Positions 1 to 8,481 of a stretch of DNA of 64,000 bases are shown piece after piece (position 1 is the first letter of the stretch; each line of letters opens with the position of its first letter). Where the stretch lies: NCBI GenBank assembly GCA_937625935.1, contig OW569375.1, positions 1 through 64,000 of the forward strand, given 5' to 3'. Both the position numbers and the translations under genes were made by a program. Origin of the DNA: Tetramitus jugosus. Lineage: Eukaryota; Protista; Heterolobosea. The notes below the pieces were generated by a model. The model did not search any database. It was not told the DNA's origin and worked only from the letters and a program-made list of their open reading frames with translations.

Positions 1-581
1 CCCAAACCCAAACCCAAACCCAAACCCAAACCCAAACCCAAACCCAAACCCAAACCCAAACCCAAACCCAAACCCAAACCCAAACCCAAACCCAAACCCA
101 AACCCAAACCCAAACCCAAACCCAAACCCAAACCCAAACCCAAACCCAAACCCAAACCCAAACCCAAACCCAAACCCAAACCCAAACCCAAACCCAAACC
201 CAAACCCAAACCCAAACCCAAACCCAAACCCAAACCCAAACCCAAACCCAAACCCAAACCCAAACCCAAACCCAAACCCAAACCCAAACCCAAACCCAAA
301 CCCAAACCCAAACCCAAACCCAAACCCAAACCCAAACCCAAACCCAAACCCAAACCCAAACCCAAACCCAAACCCAAACCCAAACCCAAACCCAAACCCA
401 AACCCAAACCCAAACCCAAACCCAAACCCAAACCCAAACCCAAACCCAAACCCAAACCCAAACCCAAACCCAAACCCAAACCCAAACCCAAACCCAAACC
501 CAAACCCAAACCCAAACCCAAACCCAAACCCAAACCCAAACCCAAACCCAAACCCAAACCCAAACCCAAACCCAAACCCAA
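1..581. repeat. Telomeric repeat array (CCCAAA)n, i.e. TTTGGG on the G-rich strand
   Basis: 96 perfect CCCAAA units (1-576) plus a partial CCCAA, at the sequence start with the C-rich strand on +, as expected for a left chromosome end; a degenerate CCGAAA unit follows. Confidence 0.97.
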
Positions 582-627
582 CCGAAACAAGAAGAAAATA
601 ATAAAATTTAACAATCACCGTAGCATC

Positions 628-1401
628 ATGAAACTTGTCCATTTATTGTGTTGGTTCGTGTTGTTAGCTGTGATTCCATGGAATTCCATTCCACAAATTA
701 GGATCGCCCTGTGAGTTCTATTCGAGCTCAGTATGGCCCAAATATCACTTCCACTCACTTGAGTGGAGATTTAAATGAAAATGTGAAGCAATTGTTGCTT
801 CACCAAGTAAAGAGAGAGGTGATTGTTCTGGGTGAGTTTAACTCTGGTTCATTGAATGTGGGAGCTGCTTCTTTGTTGAAGAACAAGGGTCCATCGAACA
901 CAAATGATGTGTGTGTTGTGAATCCACTTTGATCCATCTCTTCAGACAAGTGATCTCCATTTGAACTATTACTCCTTCTTTTCAGTATCTTTATGGTTTC
1001 AGGTTGGTGGTGACAAGGATGAGTTTGGGCAATTTTTCGGTGCAGCAAATTTCAAGTCACCAATCAGAATTAAGCATATTTTCAAACATCTCTTCCCGCA
1101 AATATCGCATTTCAAAACAGGCTCAACATCAGATATTTTCTTGTTCTGTTTTTCCTTCCCTGACCGTACAATTGTTCGTGTGATTGGTGGTAACGGGAAT
1201 GGTTCAACCCGTGGAGGTGCGATTATTGTTGGATACTTTCTATTCTACATCAATTATAATAATAATTTCCCAGTAAAGATGTTTTCATTGTCAAGTCAGT
1301 TGAAACTAGGCAATATATTGTTGTTCATGGTTTTAGCAAAGACGAGTTGGCCATTGTGTTGGCCATGGATGCGTCTGTGGATACAGGATGTATTGTTGTA
1401 A
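628..1401 (+). pseudogene. Decayed secreted/surface protein, possibly beta-propeller repeat type
   Basis: Signal-peptide-like start [15 protein letters not shown] at 628, then broken frames with blade-like motifs (VIVLGEFNSGSLNVG..NDVCVV; QVGGDKDEFG..GSTSDIFL; VIGGNGN); multiple stops and frameshifts. Confidence 0.4.
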
Positions 1402-2448
1402 ATATTCTTTTTCCTTGATGTCAAACCATCAATTAACACGTATGGTAGGAATCATAGACTTCTCCTTCACAAAGAGGCACCTTTGTTAAACCAAATCCAC
1501 CTCAAGCTGAAACCCAGTTAATTTGTTCATCTCAGCAAGATGAATCAACAGTGAACAGAGGGGTAGTTGAGGTTCCAACTACTGTGACTCATAACCCTCC
1601 ATCTACATCTGATGGTGACACTGAGATCCGCATCCAACGCGTCCTCTGCCAAAGAGACAGAGGTTCCATCTACTGACTTGACTCGTTCATCTCACTGATG
1701 AATCAATGGTGAATGATGACTGCGAAAGAAGACAACCCGAGTCATAACAACATCAGCTGAATTAGTCACTTATTGTTTAGTTCAAAGATCTTTGCATCCT
1801 TTCGATTATACAATCATCGACTACGGATGCCGAGAGCATTGAATTTTTCACAACAAACGGATAATCTTAGGCACTACCTGTAGAAGAGAGTGACGAAGAG
1901 GATTCTGATAGCTAGAGAGTTCCTCTGGTGTCGGAGCTCTCAAGTTGTCAGTTCTTTGGTCTACGGCTCGAAAAAATAAACGCTTCGCCTTCAGATGCAA
2001 CCATCAATTGATCCAAACTTTGATTTGCGCATTCGTTCCCTTGATTCCAATCAGACATCTCGTTTCCTGAATCAAAAGAATCGATTAGTAGTTACTCAAC
2101 AACTGAATCTTCCACATCGAAACGCAAGGGGAGCTTCATCAACCAAGGGTGCATCCTTACGACAATCCCTTCCTCATTCTTTATCCCATTCACCAAAGAA
2201 TCATGACCTTTTACAATCACTTGCCAGGCCAAAGTCAGCTTTGAACCGTGTACCAAGCAATCGTATGTCTATTTCATTAGTTAAGTACCATTCCTCATAT
2301 CGCTTTGTCTCACACCCAAATCGAAAAGGAGCGATCCCACAACTGAAAGAAAAGCAAAGATCTGAAGTTGGATTAATTTATCGGTCAATGACAGATTTTA
2401 GCCCTGAGTGGTGTTTGATGGAATGTCTAACTTCCGATCTTTGCGCCA

Positions 2449-2680
2449 TCAAATCCTTCGGCCAAAATCCAAGCGTTCAAGCATGTAACTTCCACCCACA
2501 CTCGCTCCTCCACCAGAAACAATTTGAGTAAAATTTGAATTACCTCCTGGAATAGAAGTAGGCGAAATGTACATCAAGCCTCCCCAGCAAGCAATATTCT
2601 TATCCTTTATAGTACAAGTAGAATCAGGACCAGTAGCAACTTGGAGATATTTATGTGATGAACAACAGTCACAGGGAATC
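2449..2680 (-). pseudogene. RCC1/BLIP-II-like repeat fragment
   Basis: YLQVATGPDSTCTIKDKNIACWGG...FTQIVSGGG resembles RCC1-like repeats; no convincing start, isolated fragment. Confidence 0.35.
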
Positions 2681-2789
2681 GAACCTGATTCGATATTCCT
2701 TTCATCAAGTGATTGAAAACTATGCTGCATCTGAAACGAAGAATTATTGTGTGGTTCTGTTTACAAAAGCTAAAAATGAGATTTAGAGT

Positions 2790-2935
2790 ATCTGAAGAAT
2801 GAGTCATTTAAGGATGTAGTTCGGTAAAAATAAACCCACAATTTTTTCCATCGTAGGGTTAATTTCACCTCCCGCGCCTTAACGGTCTTCGCAGACCTTG
2901 TCACAGTGAGCACTCTGGATCTGAGAAACAGGTGT
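2790..2935 (-). ncRNA. Candidate Fanzor omega-RNA (scaffold at the element 3' end plus flanking guide); boundaries approximate
   Basis: Lies at the CDS 3' end and transposon right end, as for TnpB/Fanzor omega-RNAs; GGUCU-GCGA-AGACC GNRA hairpin (2897-2884) and a long hairpin (2869-2823) just inside the terminus. Confidence 0.65.
2808..2835. repeat. Right-end (3') terminal inverted repeat plus TTAA of the Fanzor element
   Basis: ttaaggatgtagttcggtaaaaataaac versus the reverse complement of the other end, ttaaggatgtagtgcgttgaacctcaac. Confidence 0.85.
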
Positions 2936-4985
2936 GTTATGACGTTCTTTGTTGTGATTAATAAGTACATCTTCGATATGATCATCACATTCATGGCAGT
3001 ATTGTCGCTTGAATGTCAATTTTTCCAACTCGGATACTGTTGAATTGTTCTTCCTTGAAAACACCAGCGGTCTTTGTCCAGTGGATAACCAGTGGTGGAA
3101 GATGGAGAGAATGTTTTTTGCTGCATTTCTGTCCCTGTCGTGAGTAACACCACATGATCTACCACTGTCAATACAGCGTTTCATGCATTGTTTTACTCCA
3201 TGAACAATCTTTCCATCTCTCTTCATATTCATCGTTTGACCGTGGCATCCATTACATTTCTGTGATGTCATGTATTCATCCACCATTATCACAATTGCCT
3301 TCTTGGACAGTGCCTTAATCAATTTGTTCTTAGGAACAGGTGCATGTCCCCTGTGAGTAGAAGAGAAACCAGCAGCACCCATCGCAATTACTACTGGCTG
3401 TCCACATGCTGGTGCTAAAAATCTTTCATGGACAACTTTATCGATGGTCTTTTGTCTCATCTGATAACTATCCCAGTTCAATTTGGTGACCTTTTTCTGG
3501 GAATAAAAATCATACAGTTCATCAGCAGCATTCAAAAATGATAGAATGTGTTCTTTGTATTCCTCGGTTGTTGCAACACCGGATGGTTTGATGTTGTTTT
3601 CCAACTTCTGAATTTTGTCTTCGCATGATGATTTGTACTTCTCCAATTTTCTCTGGTTTCTTTTGTGGTGGGACAAAAAATGATATTCTGCGCCACTCAG
3701 TCTATCGAAGTTGCCATCAGTATCCACCCAAGACAATATATTTCTGATTCCGGGGTCGCATCCATAAACACGTGAAGCCTTGGGGATGCCTGTAACACTC
3801 TTCATGTCATAGCAGTCTGGTTGAGTACAAGAAATACTTGGTTCAATCCTTCTCTTCTTTTCAAACCTTTTCTTTGTCGTCTTTTGGGGTAGTCGGTTAT
3901 TGATGTGGTTTCCTATCAATTTGTGCCTCAAACAAACAGATGCTTGGTACGAACGATAGTGTTCGTACCGGTGAAACCGGTTTTCAAACAAGAAAAATTG
4001 TAAATCAACTCTTGATTGTCACACTTGGTTTTCTTCATCAACTCTTTGGTTCCAATTTGCATGAACCTCATCTTGAACCCTGACATTGGCAGTAATGTGA
4101 ATCTCTTTCCGTCTTTCTTGTTGATGTATTGGAGCAATTCCCAGTAAAAATGGTAAACCTTGGATGGATTCTGTTTGATTGTCTCTTCTGTCAGTGGTAA
4201 GGATATTTGTAACATTTGACTGACCTCATCCAAAAGAAGAGGAATCAATCGAATAAGTTCTTCTGGTGGCAGTCTTCGAAAATCATGTACCGCTGTGACG
4301 TACATAATTTTCCTTGCAATGTATTCAACCACTCTTCTTCTTTCACCAGAAAGAATTGTAGAACTCTCACCAAGCAATTCATTCACTCTCATTCTCAGAT
4401 ATCTTCTCAGCCTTGCTTCGAAGGTGAAGACCAATGAATTTTCAATAGCAGTAGCAAACTCCTTTGCCAAGTAGTTCATGGTGATTGAATAACCACTCAG
4501 CGGTATCCTTAATTCCTTAGCTATGTCCAGTGATTTGACCCACTCTGGAATTTTCTCAATGTTTCTCTTCCATTCCTTACTCTCTTTCGAAAAGAGCAAA
4601 GAAGTAACCTTTTGCAACATGTTTTGGTCCATCACATCCATTGATAAATCATCTGTCAAGCACCTGAGTATATGAAAGTTGAGAAACCTCCCAAAATGAC
4701 CAGCCGTTCTTGTCATTTGTTTCACCCTTGCTCCAATTTCACCAATGAGTTTAGGCTGTTTGGACAAGAGTCTCTTCAGACCAACTTTGACTACGTAATA
4801 ATCAGAGTATTGTTTTTTTGTCAACAACTGTCCTCTTTCTCTTTCCGGACTTGGAAACACCCTTGGGCATTCGTTGTATGTTTTTTGAAAGTTTTGTTGT
4901 TTTGGTTTTTGGTTGGTTTGTGTTTTTTGAAAAAAATTTATACGTTTGCTTCTATTTATACGTTGAGGTTCAACGCACTACATCC
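2812..4985 (-). mobile_element. Non-autonomous TIR DNA transposon carrying a Fanzor gene, flanked by TTAA
   Basis: TTAA(2808-2811)+GGATGTAGT(2812-2820) at one end and ACTACATCC(4977-4985)+TTAA(4986-4989) at the other form a perfect 13-bp inverted repeat including TTAA, with imperfect similarity extending to about 28 bp; the ends tightly bracket the Fanzor CDS; no transposase inside. Confidence 0.88.
2879..4870 (-). pseudogene. Fanzor (TnpB-family RNA-guided RuvC endonuclease, Fanzor1-like), two frameshifts
   Basis: RuvC-I YGCDPGIRN, GAAGF..RGHAPVP, repositioned RuvC-II VDEYMTSQKC, zinc ribbon CNGC...CMKRC, RuvC-III HDRDRNAAKNI, C-terminal RPLVFSR; N-half (3928-4860) has VVKVGLKRLL and RFTLLPM; ATG at 4870 (MPKGVSKSGKRER); frameshifts at the A7 run 4813-4819 and at about 3945-3990. 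Confidence 0.92.
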
Positions 4986-4989
4986 TTAA
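4962..4989. repeat. Left-end (5') terminal inverted repeat plus TTAA of the Fanzor element
   Basis: Reverse complement matches 2808-2835; overlaps a small hairpin cgttga-ggt-tcaacg (4961-4975); the direct repeat atttatacgtt lies at 4936-4946 and 4954-4964. Confidence 0.85.
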
Positions 4990-5229
4990 TGTTGTGATTT
5001 GTGGTTGCACACTAAATGCTATTGTGCTCTTTGGAAGACAAGGCCGAGCAACCAGAAACAACAGAATTGACCAAGCATTGCCAAGAAGAGTGTTTTGAAG
5101 ACGATGGCAACAAAAATTTTACAAAATGACATATGACACACCGACGCACCTCACTGATGGTAGTCCCGGAGAGTCTTCATTCACCTAGCAACTCTTATCT
5201 TGTTCATTTCGCATAAACAACTACAAGGT

Positions 5230-6769
5230 TCATTGTGAATGTCCTTCATCGAAGAATGAAGTAAGAGCATCATACATATCACTCGACTTCAATTTGGTCG
5301 CAATCTCCTGAAAATTATACCTGTCATAGTCATGCCAGAAGTTGTAGGATTGCCGGAATCGTTCTTCATCAGTTCCAGTAAATTGATAGACAGACTTGTC
5401 ATCATCTTTTAAAAAACAGAATGTTTTCAATAGTGATTCACAATCATACACAGCCTTGTACTCTCGTAAACTGATCGTTCGATTTTGCTTCTCTCTCAGG
5501 TAGTCATTCGCACAAAAGGTAATAGTTCCCGCAAACACACATTCTTCATTCAATTTGTGAGCAAAACCCCAGTCAATCAAAACAGGACGTCCAATACTGT
5601 CTAATAAAATATTATCTGGTCTTATATCTCTATGACCAAAAGAAAGTGAGTGCAGTTTCTTCAATAGGTCAATTAATATCAAGCCTTTTTCCTTCGTAAG
5701 TACCTCAAGTGGTGCCAGTATCCCCAATGTGATGTATCCTCGAGAGTGATGAATCATTTTGGGAATATTTGCACTATGCTCCCCTAGATGAGCATGCAGA
5801 TGTTCGAGGATGCGAGCCTCATTTTCAAAACAGGCTAAGAATTTTTCTTCTTGACATACCTTCACTGCTTGGTTGTCACGGTTCTGAAAAACACAAGATG
5901 TCAAACCTTCTCCTAAGAATTTTCTAAGGGCCATACTTTCATTTGGTTCGATGATTGCATTTATAGAATCTAACTCGTCAGACTTCATGTTCAATAGTCC
6001 TGACAACATATCTAGACCAATAGTGCTCTGTGATCCATCAGTTGGAGCAAAGAGTAGGGATTTTGTTCGTGTAATTTGTATAGTTCTCCCATCCATGTTT
6101 CTATCTGCTCTCAAGAGGATAATCGAATTGTAATTGGATAAAAATCCATAGATTGCGTACCTTCTCGTCTGATGTAGTTCTAGGATCGTTCGCATATAGA
6201 AGGTTATTTGTCCAAGCATTGTGTCTGTTTCAATATTGACATGAGGTGCTTTGACATCACCTACACCGATCACAATCTTCGACAGTAATGGACCGATATT
6301 CTTGTCCTTCAAGTCAATTTCAAATTTTCTCAGAGTAATTGCAAAATCCGGTGATAATAGCTGTTCCTCCTCGCCAGTTTTTGGAGTGCGTGTCATGAAC
6401 TTTGAGAGAGGAATCAACTTCAAGCACTTTAAAGATTTCCCCAAATGTTTCTTGAACAAACACCTCATTGGTGCTGGTTTGAGAAGGAAAGTCATAGTTC
6501 AAAGTTTTTGGTTTCCAAAGGCTCCCAGGAAGGACGATAGTCTCGAAGGGTTTGATCCTACTATAATATGATGCATAAGTGGTTGAATCCAACTTGAATT
6601 TTTTGTTGTCACTCTGAAATTCTAGTTCTGCTCTCCTGGTCTTTTGTCGTTCTACAATATCAATTTGTTTTGTTTTCTCCTGTTCTCGTTTTGTTTTCTC
6701 CCGTTCACTGACGATTGTTACAATCGTTGAAGCTAAAACTTGGACGATGTCATCGTTTTGCTGTTCCAT
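5230..6769 (-). pseudogene. Crinkler/CR-effector-like protein: PD-(D/E)xK REase-like domain + protein kinase, one frameshift
   Basis: ATG 6769 (MEQQNDD), coiled coil, HDTH, then SPDFAI...VGDVK...LGQITFY...YGFLSN, then kinase LGEGLTSCVF, AVK, HRDIRPDN, LIDWGFA; the two ORFs join if one A is removed from the A5 run at 6378-6382 (about 512 aa). Confidence 0.75.
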
Positions 6770-6946
6770 TATTGATTGTTTTTTTGTTGAATGTTTGTTG
6801 GTCTCAACCGCAAAAAATCGCAAAAGGTTTCGCGAAATTGTTACAATCGGATAAAACTTCAGGAAGGAAAATCACTGGAATAACGACTGGCCATTGGAAA
6901 GGAAAAGAAGGAAAAGCAGGTTTTCTTCAGAAAGTACTTTATGAAT

Positions 6947-7128
6947 TTACAACTTGATGCTCTTGTATCTCTCGTCATCAATTGCCTCTCTCAAGATACC
7001 AAAAGGTGAGAAGTCTTCTCCGTTGATCACAGCCTTAAGCAGGGCTGGAGAGAAGCCAGCCAACATTGCAACACCTTGCTCGTTAGACTTGGCGGCAAAG
7101 TCACGCACATTCCAGTACGATCTGAGCA
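6947..7128 (-). pseudogene. C-terminal fragment of a DUF2828-like (vWA-fold) protein
   Basis: QIV-YWNVR...GVAMLAGFSPALLKAV...SPFGILREAIDDERY resembles the DUF2828 C-terminal pattern as I recall it; the 5' part is missing. Confidence 0.5.
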
Positions 7129-7207: not shown

Positions 7208-8481
7208 ATGAGAAGGACAACCAATCCCCATGAAAGCAATGGATATCTTGTCATGAATGACATGGCCAATAATCACATGAATAAGATTTTTTGGGCACTG
7301 AGTCTAGATTCATGGTCCAAGATCCTAGAGTTTTTGGACACCAGAGAATGGATGCAGTTGAGTTACACTTGCAAAGGGTTCAATCAATTCAAGTACAGCA
7401 AACAATGCCTGTTCAACAAGCGAAGAACGTTGAAACGTGATTTATCGTCTCGAAAGATTGAACACTTCTTTGCACTGGGAAAAGGAACATTGCTCAATGT
7501 GAGTAATGTGCACTTTCAATATTTAGAAGGTATTCATACGCTCGATATGAGTCATTGCAATCAAAAAACGATTTCAGATGAAGCATTTAAACACTTGACA
7601 GGTATTCAATCACTCGATATTAGTTTATGCTTTCAAATCACAGACAACGCGTTTTCTCATTTGAAAGGCATTCATACACTTTTGATGGCTTATTGTAATC
7701 ACTCAACGATCACAAATGAGGCGTTTAAACACTTGAAAGGTATTCACACACTTAATATGGTTGGTGTCCGGCAAGCAACAATTACAGACGATGCCCTTTC
7801 GTATCTTGAAGGCATTCACTCTCTCAATATGAGTCATTGTACTCAAATCACAGACAAAGCCTTTTCTTACTTGAAAGGCATTCATACACTCAACATGATT
7901 CGTTGTCGTCAAGAAACCATTACAGATGAGGCTTTTTCACATCTAGAAGGCATTCACACACTAGATATGACCAATTGCAACCAAAATACGATCACAGATG
8001 AAGCATTCAAGCACTTGAAAGGTATTCATACACTTACTATGGCCTATTGCAATCAACCAACAATTACCGATTGGGCTTTTTCTCATTTGGAAGGCATTCA
8101 TACACTCAATATGACTCTCTGCCAGCAAAAAACTATCACAGATGAAGCTTTTTCACATCTTGAAGGAATTCATACTCTGATTATTCTCCATTGTACATGA
8201 GTGGTTGTGATCAAGAATCAATCACAGATCGTGCATTCTCTCATTTGAAAGGCATTCACACACTTTCTATGCTTTGTTGTACTCAAACAACAATCACAGA
8301 CAGTGCATTCTCCTATTTGAACGGGATTCATACACTGGATATGAGACATTGTAATCAACAATATATCACCAACAAAGCAGTTTCAAATTTGAATCCACGT
8401 GATATCAGAAAAGATCAAACATTCATCGAAAATGTGACCTTATCTCTAAAAAAGTTAATGAATCGAATATTCGGGAAATAG
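7208..8481 (+). pseudogene. F-box + leucine-rich repeat protein with a frameshift at about 8190
   Basis: F-box-like LSLDSWSKILEFLDTREWMQLSYTCK; about 11 repeats of 24/26 aa (ITDEAFSHLEGIHTLxMxxCxQ); repeats continue in another frame at 8191-8481, as expected from a partial-repeat deletion. Confidence 0.8.

Follow-up and report, generated by a model that had tools for sequence, protein, structure and literature searches.

The locus described here raises three questions: whether a gene for an RNA-guided nuclease of the Fanzor type, lying near a telomere of the free-living heterolobosean amoeba Tetramitus jugosus, belongs to a working mobile element, what kind of transposon carried it there, and what the nuclease may have contributed. 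The DNA analyzed, referred to below as the window, is a stretch of 64,000 nucleotides (positions 1 to 64,000 of contig OW569375.1, assembly GCA_937625935.1), in which the element occupies 2808-4989, with a minus-strand gene and 2,174 bp between two flanking TTAA sequences. A first-pass annotation had described it as a complete Fanzor mini-transposon, 2.2 kb from the telomere and enclosed by inverted repeats with TTAA on both sides. The distance holds, since the CCCAAA array at the window start ends at ~576-582 (for its unit, TTTGGG/CCCAAA, we found no paper tying it to this host), and the repeats are borne out, but the gene is not complete. We conclude, with a probability of about 0.68, that the element is a non-autonomous cut-and-paste DNA transposon with Kolobok-type ends whose sole gene is a Fanzor1 pseudogene. 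On this reading, a divergent subfamily (42-44% protein identity to ~30 sisters), outside the young Fanzor family of the genome but with its type-A ends, survives in this one minimal copy.

The inverted arms at 2808-2835 and 4962-4989, TTAA included at both ends, form the longest inverted repeat within 500-7000 and the only TTAA-bounded inverted pair across the 64 kb. In the genome that was searched, an assembly of 26.35 Mb in 56 contigs, the exact 12-mer of the element end occurs 22 times and its reversed control not once. Kolobok transposons, known from Naegleria, combine TTAA duplication with 5'-RR/YY-3' termini (R, purine; Y, pyrimidine), unlike piggyBac (PMC9587614). Throughout the family, TTAA is present at 28 of 29 right ends (the exception is TTGG) with CC before it in all, every left end read is TTAA-GG, and all 14 elements with both ends in view have GG…CC termini, that is, RR…YY together with short inverted repeats. 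The duplication is visible as one TTAA at an empty site, described below, and two at the filled site. Inverted repeats and a 4-bp duplication mark a eukaryotic transposon as the carrier. A TA duplication inside TTAA would give the same junctions, and we therefore speak of Kolobok-type ends rather than of a Kolobok member.

The protein of the element is almost certainly a Fanzor1: its motifs, a profile search, and the modeled fold of one sister all point that way. The Fanzor signature consists of DPG, an E six residues before CxxC at 120-160 residues after DPG, and a D after the zinc ribbon (PMC10711439). All three are found in the 3' piece of the gene, which matches PF07282 and SpuFz1: the RuvC-I D (3757-3755) lies in CDPG (3760-3749), the RuvC-II E (3277-3275) lies in VDEYMTS, six residues ahead of the first CxxC and 157 residues past DPG, and the RuvC-III D (3133-3131) lies in RDRNAA just past the zinc ribbon, with RDRN aligned to the RD of SpuFz1. 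A profile of 101 relatives gave E values of 7e-99 for SpuFz1, 3e-73 for PpFz1, and 4e-70 for GtFz1 versus 1e-10 for mimivirus Fz2. Fold comparison was made on an intact sister, not on the 2808-4989 copy itself, and its structure model (predicted local distance difference test score 91) gave template modeling (TM) scores of 0.72 with SpuFz1, 0.66 with PpFz1, and 0.61 with GtFz1, versus 0.21 with Fz2 and ~0.2 with TnpB. Profile and fold both rank the three Fanzor1 structures first, with mimivirus Fz2 standing for Fanzor2. The RuvC triad with its zinc ribbon and the preference for Fanzor1 over Fanzor2 had been proposed at first pass; the former is confirmed in the 3' piece, with the catalytic Glu beside the ribbon (E-x6-CxxC), and the latter is supported by the E values and TM scores. 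Together, the three gene pieces span the whole length of the sister proteins of 628-649 aa, with the size and REC lobe of a Fanzor1. The traits of Fanzor2 and IS607EU elements (a compact TnpB-like protein, a serine recombinase, and no inverted repeats) are not those seen here, and no serine recombinase was found in any family element with two ends in view. A C-terminal extension of ~55 aa (window 2879-3010, minus strand), with a CxxC and several His, is absent from the sisters, and a Pfam search with this Cys/His stretch was empty at E≤1.

The gene in 2808-4989 is a pseudogene in every sample seen. Its pieces, which were searched separately throughout, are parted by two breaks. At break 1, the frame is lost within an A7 run (4819-4813), unchanged in runs X1, X3, and X7 and in contig L077. 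Break 2 holds a perfect 9-bp hairpin (3969-3961/3954-3946), and the motif lost there is TDG, of which the T and G are kept in ≥90% of the 101 relatives. Near-identical DNA is present in groundwater and soil samples, and contigs from three independent runs (isolate, groundwater, and soil) cross the breaks with few substitutions and no indel; two further public assemblies contain both breaks (metagenome contig L077) or break 2 (Logan contig L075). Because contigs from independent runs and public assemblies carry them, the breaks are not assembly errors, and that reading is ruled out for both. The length deficit at break 2 and the loss of TDG mean that it is not a simple one-base slip and that the pieces do not sum to a normal 660-aa protein. 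The two overlapping minus-strand open reading frames (ORFs; 3928-4860 and 2879-3991) and the short 5' piece (22 codons from ATG 4870, which follows both TATAAAT boxes at a distance of 119 nt from the left TTAA) named in the first-pass annotation are thus present, whereas the single protein of ~660 aa that they were to reconstruct is not. An intact frame is found in 19 sisters and not in this copy.

Protein searches detected ~30 further Fanzor loci in the genome, with 39-46% protein identity to the element, and the 19 intact sisters among them have ORFs of 628-649 aa with every motif present. Over the parts they share, the DNA of the sister copies compared is 90-98% identical, and these copies are hence young. 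Two end types exist in the family: type A, shared with the element at 2808-4989, belongs to elements of 3.4-4.0 kb that include a Vps35 C-terminal fragment and an F-box-like piece, and type B to elements of ~2.7 kb. In many copies of the long sister elements (L050:277-1014, L003:1733-2104), the Vps35 fragment (Pfam E 6e-51) is open over 200-234 aa; the F-box-like piece is on the opposite strand. No transposase is coded by any family element seen end to end. Other copies share the ends of the element, as the type-A ends of sisters and the 12-mer sites attest, and its DNA likeness to sisters is limited to the first 57 nt and the last ~30. A quick tree built from the RuvC halves places it outside all the sisters and their metagenomic relatives, yet within one clade with them (Shimodaira-Hasegawa-like approximate likelihood ratio test 98). 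Intact copies therefore exist as the 19 sister ORFs, but no intact member of the element's own subfamily was found by genome DNA search, profile search, or in the HMMER library, metagenome contigs, or viral contigs; the 43% HMMER-library match (P0009) is the element's own 3' piece. The self-contained module mobilized in trans that had been envisaged stands as a non-autonomous set of nuclease, predicted omega-RNA (ωRNA), and ends, but this copy of it does not work. Neither the Kolobok-type ends nor the larger family of intact sisters had been named at first pass. The suggestion of a new lineage for the host group is in keeping with the heterolobosean host and with a literature search that found no paper joining "Fanzor" and "Heterolobosea". 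Sister proteins are mosaic (e.g., L022 versus L043 versus the C22 copy): two N-terminal types (~65% identical) are joined to one common C-terminal stretch of 100 aa, and in the RuvC tree the C22 copy is placed together with metagenomic P0001; both observations suggest recombination between copies.

At the end of contig C8 (626424-629902) lies a paralog of the element's subtelomere (window 600-6860), 93-96% identical to it and without the element; this paralog also lacks ~497 nt (1889-2385) and 147 nt (2635-2781). Its junction holds one TTAA, uncut, and the exact empty site was found only once in the genome. The empty joint (2811 to 4999) is clean in runs X1 and X3, with a variant of it in X15. 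Insertion after a subtelomere duplication and precise loss from C8 would both fit. Shorter pieces of this subtelomere recur near several other contig ends.

The predicted ωRNA occupies the right end of the element. Its last 98 nt fold with z = -3.75, none of 200 shuffles being as stable, and in the long stem, the internal UUAAGG (2882-2877) would pair with the terminal CCUUAA (2813-2808). Type A, type B, and one metagenomic end fold alike with differing inner sequence, and the six closing base pairs are invariant in eight related ends. Fanzor1 scaffolds take in the transposon end and the target-site copy (PMC10711439, PMC13565253), and the predicted fold fits this arrangement. The 3' ORF terminates at the TAA within the internal TTAAGG, and its C-terminal extension runs into the predicted ωRNA and overlaps the first hairpin of the latter. 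The main stem (window 2808-2882) is bounded by TTAA-GG…CC-TTAA, like a 75-nt mini-element; the type A/B differences in sisters fall inside it, and its internal TTAA is preceded by G, a base avoided at insertion sites.

The flanks of the family are asymmetric. At the position 5' of TTAA (-1), C occurs at 1 of 19 left ends versus 13 of 28 mirrored right positions (Fisher p = 0.003), and the sole left end with C (on contig C24) belongs to a copy with a shortened ORF and a damaged right TTAA. G is scarce at left ends (0/19) and mirrored right positions (1/28) alike, a pattern that resembles a symmetric preference of the transposase. The element's own site is A-TTAA. With a target-adjacent motif (TAM) of TTAA alone, the right junction of the element (CC-TTAA-guide) would be open to self-cutting; a W-TTAA TAM (W, A or T) that rejects C at -1 would give the flank pattern and spare the CC-TTAA end. 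In parallel, the CATA TAM of SpuFz1 extends the TA duplication on the left only.

These observations suggest the following course of events. The element fills TTAA in one of two paralogous subtelomeres, with TTAA on both sides, and would have been moved there by a DDE transposase coded elsewhere, most likely Kolobok. By what is known of Fanzor1 biology and from the fold, a right-end transcript would become the ωRNA, with a scaffold that includes the end and the TTAA copy and a guide formed by the next 15-16 nt of flank. The intact ancestor would have cut W-TTAA-guide sites in an empty allele or paralog, which would then have regained the element through repair templated on the filled copy, while the right junction would be spared through rejection of C at -1. 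Two lesions killed the gene, and the matching empty site survives uncut, as expected when a nuclease is dead and its RNA goes unused by the sisters. We lean slightly toward such a homing role of Fanzor in the sister family.

An alternative, which we regard as possible and the less likely of the two, is that Fanzor is a passenger without a homing role, the bias coming from asymmetric target capture and the intact ORFs reflecting a recent burst. With sisters so alike in DNA (90-98%), intact ORFs need no selection, and empty-site cleavage is listed for prokaryotic TnpB and IscB only (PMC13565253). However, the avoided base is exactly that shown by the element at its own junction, and three protein lineages (42-65% identical) with several end types keep the catalytic triad and the two-stem RNA layout.

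As the mobilizer of the element, a Kolobok transposase has a modest edge over other candidates. The Fanzor carriers named in a 2026 review are Mariner, Sola2, MuDR, Harbinger, Helitron, Crypton, hAT, EnSpm, and piggyBac, with Kolobok unlisted (PMC13565253), and this review was the only paper that a literature search for Kolobok and Fanzor returned. Movement of the same element by one of the genome's piggyBac transposases would be a less probable course, to which we give little weight. Such a transposase also duplicates TTAA, and it excises without a scar, which would suit homing; piggyBac termini are of the CC…GG type, whereas those of the family are GG…CC. The genome contains 13 matches to PF13843 (piggyBac) at ~10 loci, several with open frames of 580-970 aa (G000:C18:150044-151294, C30:266267-267517, C34:198515, C18:38735, and C39:393561), and two pairs with identical scores suggest recent duplication. 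piggyBac is also listed among Fanzor carriers in Repbase (PMC13565253), but RR…YY termini are the feature that separates Kolobok from it (PMC9587614), and no type-A/B end match lies within ~30 kb of a piggyBac locus.

A Tc1/mariner-type element with TA duplication, AGG…CCT ends, and a strong T-TA-A preference would produce the same junctions and empty site, and the model element SPu-1 has TA duplications. Tc1-like DDE_3 fragments are present in the genome, but they are short, mostly broken, and away from type-A/B ends, near which no piggyBac domain was found either. Moreover, TTAA at 28 of 29 right ends and at all left ends read is a strictness that exceeds what TA specialists usually show, and a mobilizer of this type is improbable. 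Unpaired 15-16 nt matches to type-A/B ends without a Fanzor nearby occur at G000:C4:597941, C8:461446, C10:247202, C11:254183, C15:15257, C24:126317, C25:365142, C35:56457, and C47:119537; these are candidate ghost or autonomous elements.

It is very doubtful that the dead copy acts as a guide donor, or "ghost", whose ωRNA sisters would load to cut the C8 subtelomere and drive chromosome-end recombination. Its predicted scaffold is still well folded, the terminal stem is common to sisters, and ghost ωRNAs work in SpuFz1, but the perfect C8 target is unscarred in the assembly, with its joint clean in both X1 and X3, and the first hairpin differs strongly from those of the sisters. That the copy is functional, with break 1 an assembly slip or recoding site and break 2 a 26-nt GT-AG micro-intron (3968-3943), is hardly credible: an A7 run is a typical error site and excising the GT…AG stretch would place both ORFs in one frame, but short-read contigs of independent samples have both breaks, splicing would leave a protein ~12 residues short and still without TxG, and an RNA-library contig (which may be DNA) crosses 3968-3943 unspliced, so that the micro-intron, judged without a joined-model search, is ruled out by the motif loss and by the fact that no joint was seen.

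Relatives of the family were also detected in other DNA. Five database proteins are 59-96% identical to a sister. L073 carries type-B ends, and the right end of L074 is likewise of type B; in the L073 element, which comes from a metagenome, TCAA stands in place of TTAA at the left end (L073:393-404). Two of the database proteins, P0002 and P0004, are coded on gene-dense contigs with short, packed genes (thioredoxin, PP2C, ubiquitin-RING, BTB, and glycosyltransferase), which look like giant-virus DNA by gene content and packing. Two 81%-identical Fanzor1 elements (L071:2375-4556 and L072:1725-3897) lie on virus-like contigs of one metagenome, and their 3' ends agree up to CTCTAT and then diverge. 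No inverted repeats were found around the virus-like relatives, and their common 3' end differs from that of the host family. In the quick RuvC-half tree, P0002 and P0004 nest inside the host clade, which would be consistent with host-to-virus transfer of one Fanzor1 branch. A search of viral contigs for type-A/B end patterns gave 21 chance matches, with no partner end and no Fanzor.

Several points weigh against the account given here. A search of the genome with PF20700 found no Kolobok transposase, a result that is uninformative since the control was equally silent, and piggyBac-family genes with long ORFs are present in the genome. The tree is a quick version based on the RuvC half only. 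No covariation was measurable for the stem pairs with RNAalifold, in an alignment that is poor beyond the terminal stem, and transposition in any case constrains the terminal CCTTAA. For the flank asymmetry, 19 of the ~30 left ends were available, located by exact TTAAGG; the count falls to only 1 versus 7 (p = 0.07) among copies for which both ends are known, and an asymmetric transposase could yield the same bias. The predicted TAM, ωRNA, and homing role are drawn from sequence and fold prediction.

The features of the element are collected in Table 1. On its left it is adjoined by a kinase gene (window 5230-6823, minus strand; Pkinase E 7e-11) with an overlapping ORF upstream, which is split over two frames and near 6370 differs from the window in four sequencing runs. 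At 7208-8481 (plus strand), there is an F-box and leucine-rich-repeat gene, in two frames and typical of a subtelomeric zone. The best named matches of a neighboring carboxypeptidase are from Naegleria lovaniensis (50%), N. fowleri, Willaertia, and Acrasis, which places the host among the Heterolobosea, though probably outside Naegleria.

Table 1 Features of the Fanzor1 element, in window positions
Feature	Position	Strand	Remark
Left target-site copy TTAA	4986..4989	-	With A at 4990 (coding strand, base 5' of TTAA), predicted TAM
Left terminal inverted repeat	4974..4985	-	GG start; type A; 11/12 match to right end
Left end common to type-A sister elements	4936..4985	-	82-88% over ~57 nt
Two TATAAAT boxes	4960-4954 and 4942-4936	-	Candidate promoter
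5' piece of Fanzor gene	4802..4870	-	ATG 4870; basic NLS (nuclear localization signal)-like start homologous to sister proteins
Middle piece	3976..4812	-	WED start, helical REC half; 39-43% identity with intact sisters
Break 2	3947..3975	-	29 nt where sisters need 42; near-invariant TxG WED motif lost
3' piece	2879..3946	-	RuvC motifs and zinc ribbon
Predicted ωRNA scaffold	2808..2897	-	Small hairpin 2897-2884, then long stem
Right terminal inverted repeat	2812..2823	-	CC end
Right target-site copy TTAA	2808..2811	-	Part of predicted scaffold stem
Predicted guide	2792..2807	-	First 16 nt of right flank; exact match behind A-TTAA at G000:C8:628326-628353

The new findings are a subfamily that is both divergent and dead, an empty target within the genome, the flank statistic, and the inverted-repeat-less relatives on virus-like contigs. 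Restorative homing has been shown for bacterial TnpB and IscB and only proposed in eukaryotes (PMC13565253). Target-duplicating cut-and-paste carriers face self-cutting, because TTAA and the guide match sit at their own right junction, and the family offers a testable answer in a TAM that rejects C at -1, with 19 intact proteins available for assays and an empty target that occurs naturally in the same genome. As a speculative synthesis, Kolobok transposons of the amoeba may harbor two or more long-diverged lineages of Fanzor1, which home into TTAA sites that have been emptied, are self-spared through a fifth TAM base that excludes C, and leave an orientation bias, one branch having entered virus-like genomes and lost its inverted repeats. 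If true, this would be a first natural footprint of eukaryotic Fanzor homing, with filled and empty paralogs in one genome. The family would extend the range of Fanzor1 to Kolobok-type ends and to Heterolobosea, and would perhaps contribute new TTAA-TAM nucleases. Since the copy at 2808-4989 is dead, its value is that of an outgroup and a negative control, a perfect target having been left uncut.

Among known systems, NlovFz2 of Naegleria lovaniensis shares a heterolobosean host and the rearranged catalytic E, but it is a Fanzor2 without inverted repeats and with a CCG TAM, the distance to Fanzor2 being judged by the mimivirus Fz2 structure. The insect-virus Fanzor1 elements SFav-1 and HVav-1 (PMC3627910), likened here by description rather than by end sequences, are likewise Fanzor-only, with repeats of 13 bp and 4-bp TT-starting duplications that the RNA scaffold includes, and no transposase is known for them; their duplication is TTAN versus strict TTAA here, and their hosts are viral. 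GtFz1 of Guillardia theta (PDB 9CER) is a Fanzor1 with a TTAA-type TAM in vitro and an ωRNA that overlaps the ORF end, whereas its loci reportedly have no inverted repeats and its third catalytic residue is N rather than D. Kolobok transposons resemble the element in TTAA duplication, 5'-RR and YY-3' termini, short inverted repeats, and a report from Naegleria, and several of their lineages carry accessory nucleases (KolobokP, E, and D), among which Fanzor is not listed (PMC9587614); their DDD/E transposase with C/DxxH is absent from the element and was not found in the genome (PF20700, control silent). A close parallel is SPu-1 with SpuFz1 of Spizellomyces punctatus (PDB 8GKH; PMC3627910, PMC10432273), which has a length of ~2.1 kb, a single ORF of ~630-660 aa, terminal inverted repeats, no transposase, an ωRNA in the right end, the same fold (TM 0.72, sister model), and a conserved flank that exceeds the duplication on the left only (CA-TA). 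It differs in protein (~18-25% identity), in its TA rather than TTAA duplication, and in its 30-bp rather than 12-bp repeats, and the GG…CC ends, the heterolobosean host, and the pseudogene are particular to the element. The element thus belongs with known non-autonomous elements that carry Fanzor1 alone and closely resembles SPu-1, its own gene being a pseudogene; it is set apart by its Kolobok-type ends, its host group, its divergent subfamily, and a testable TAM and empty-site prediction.

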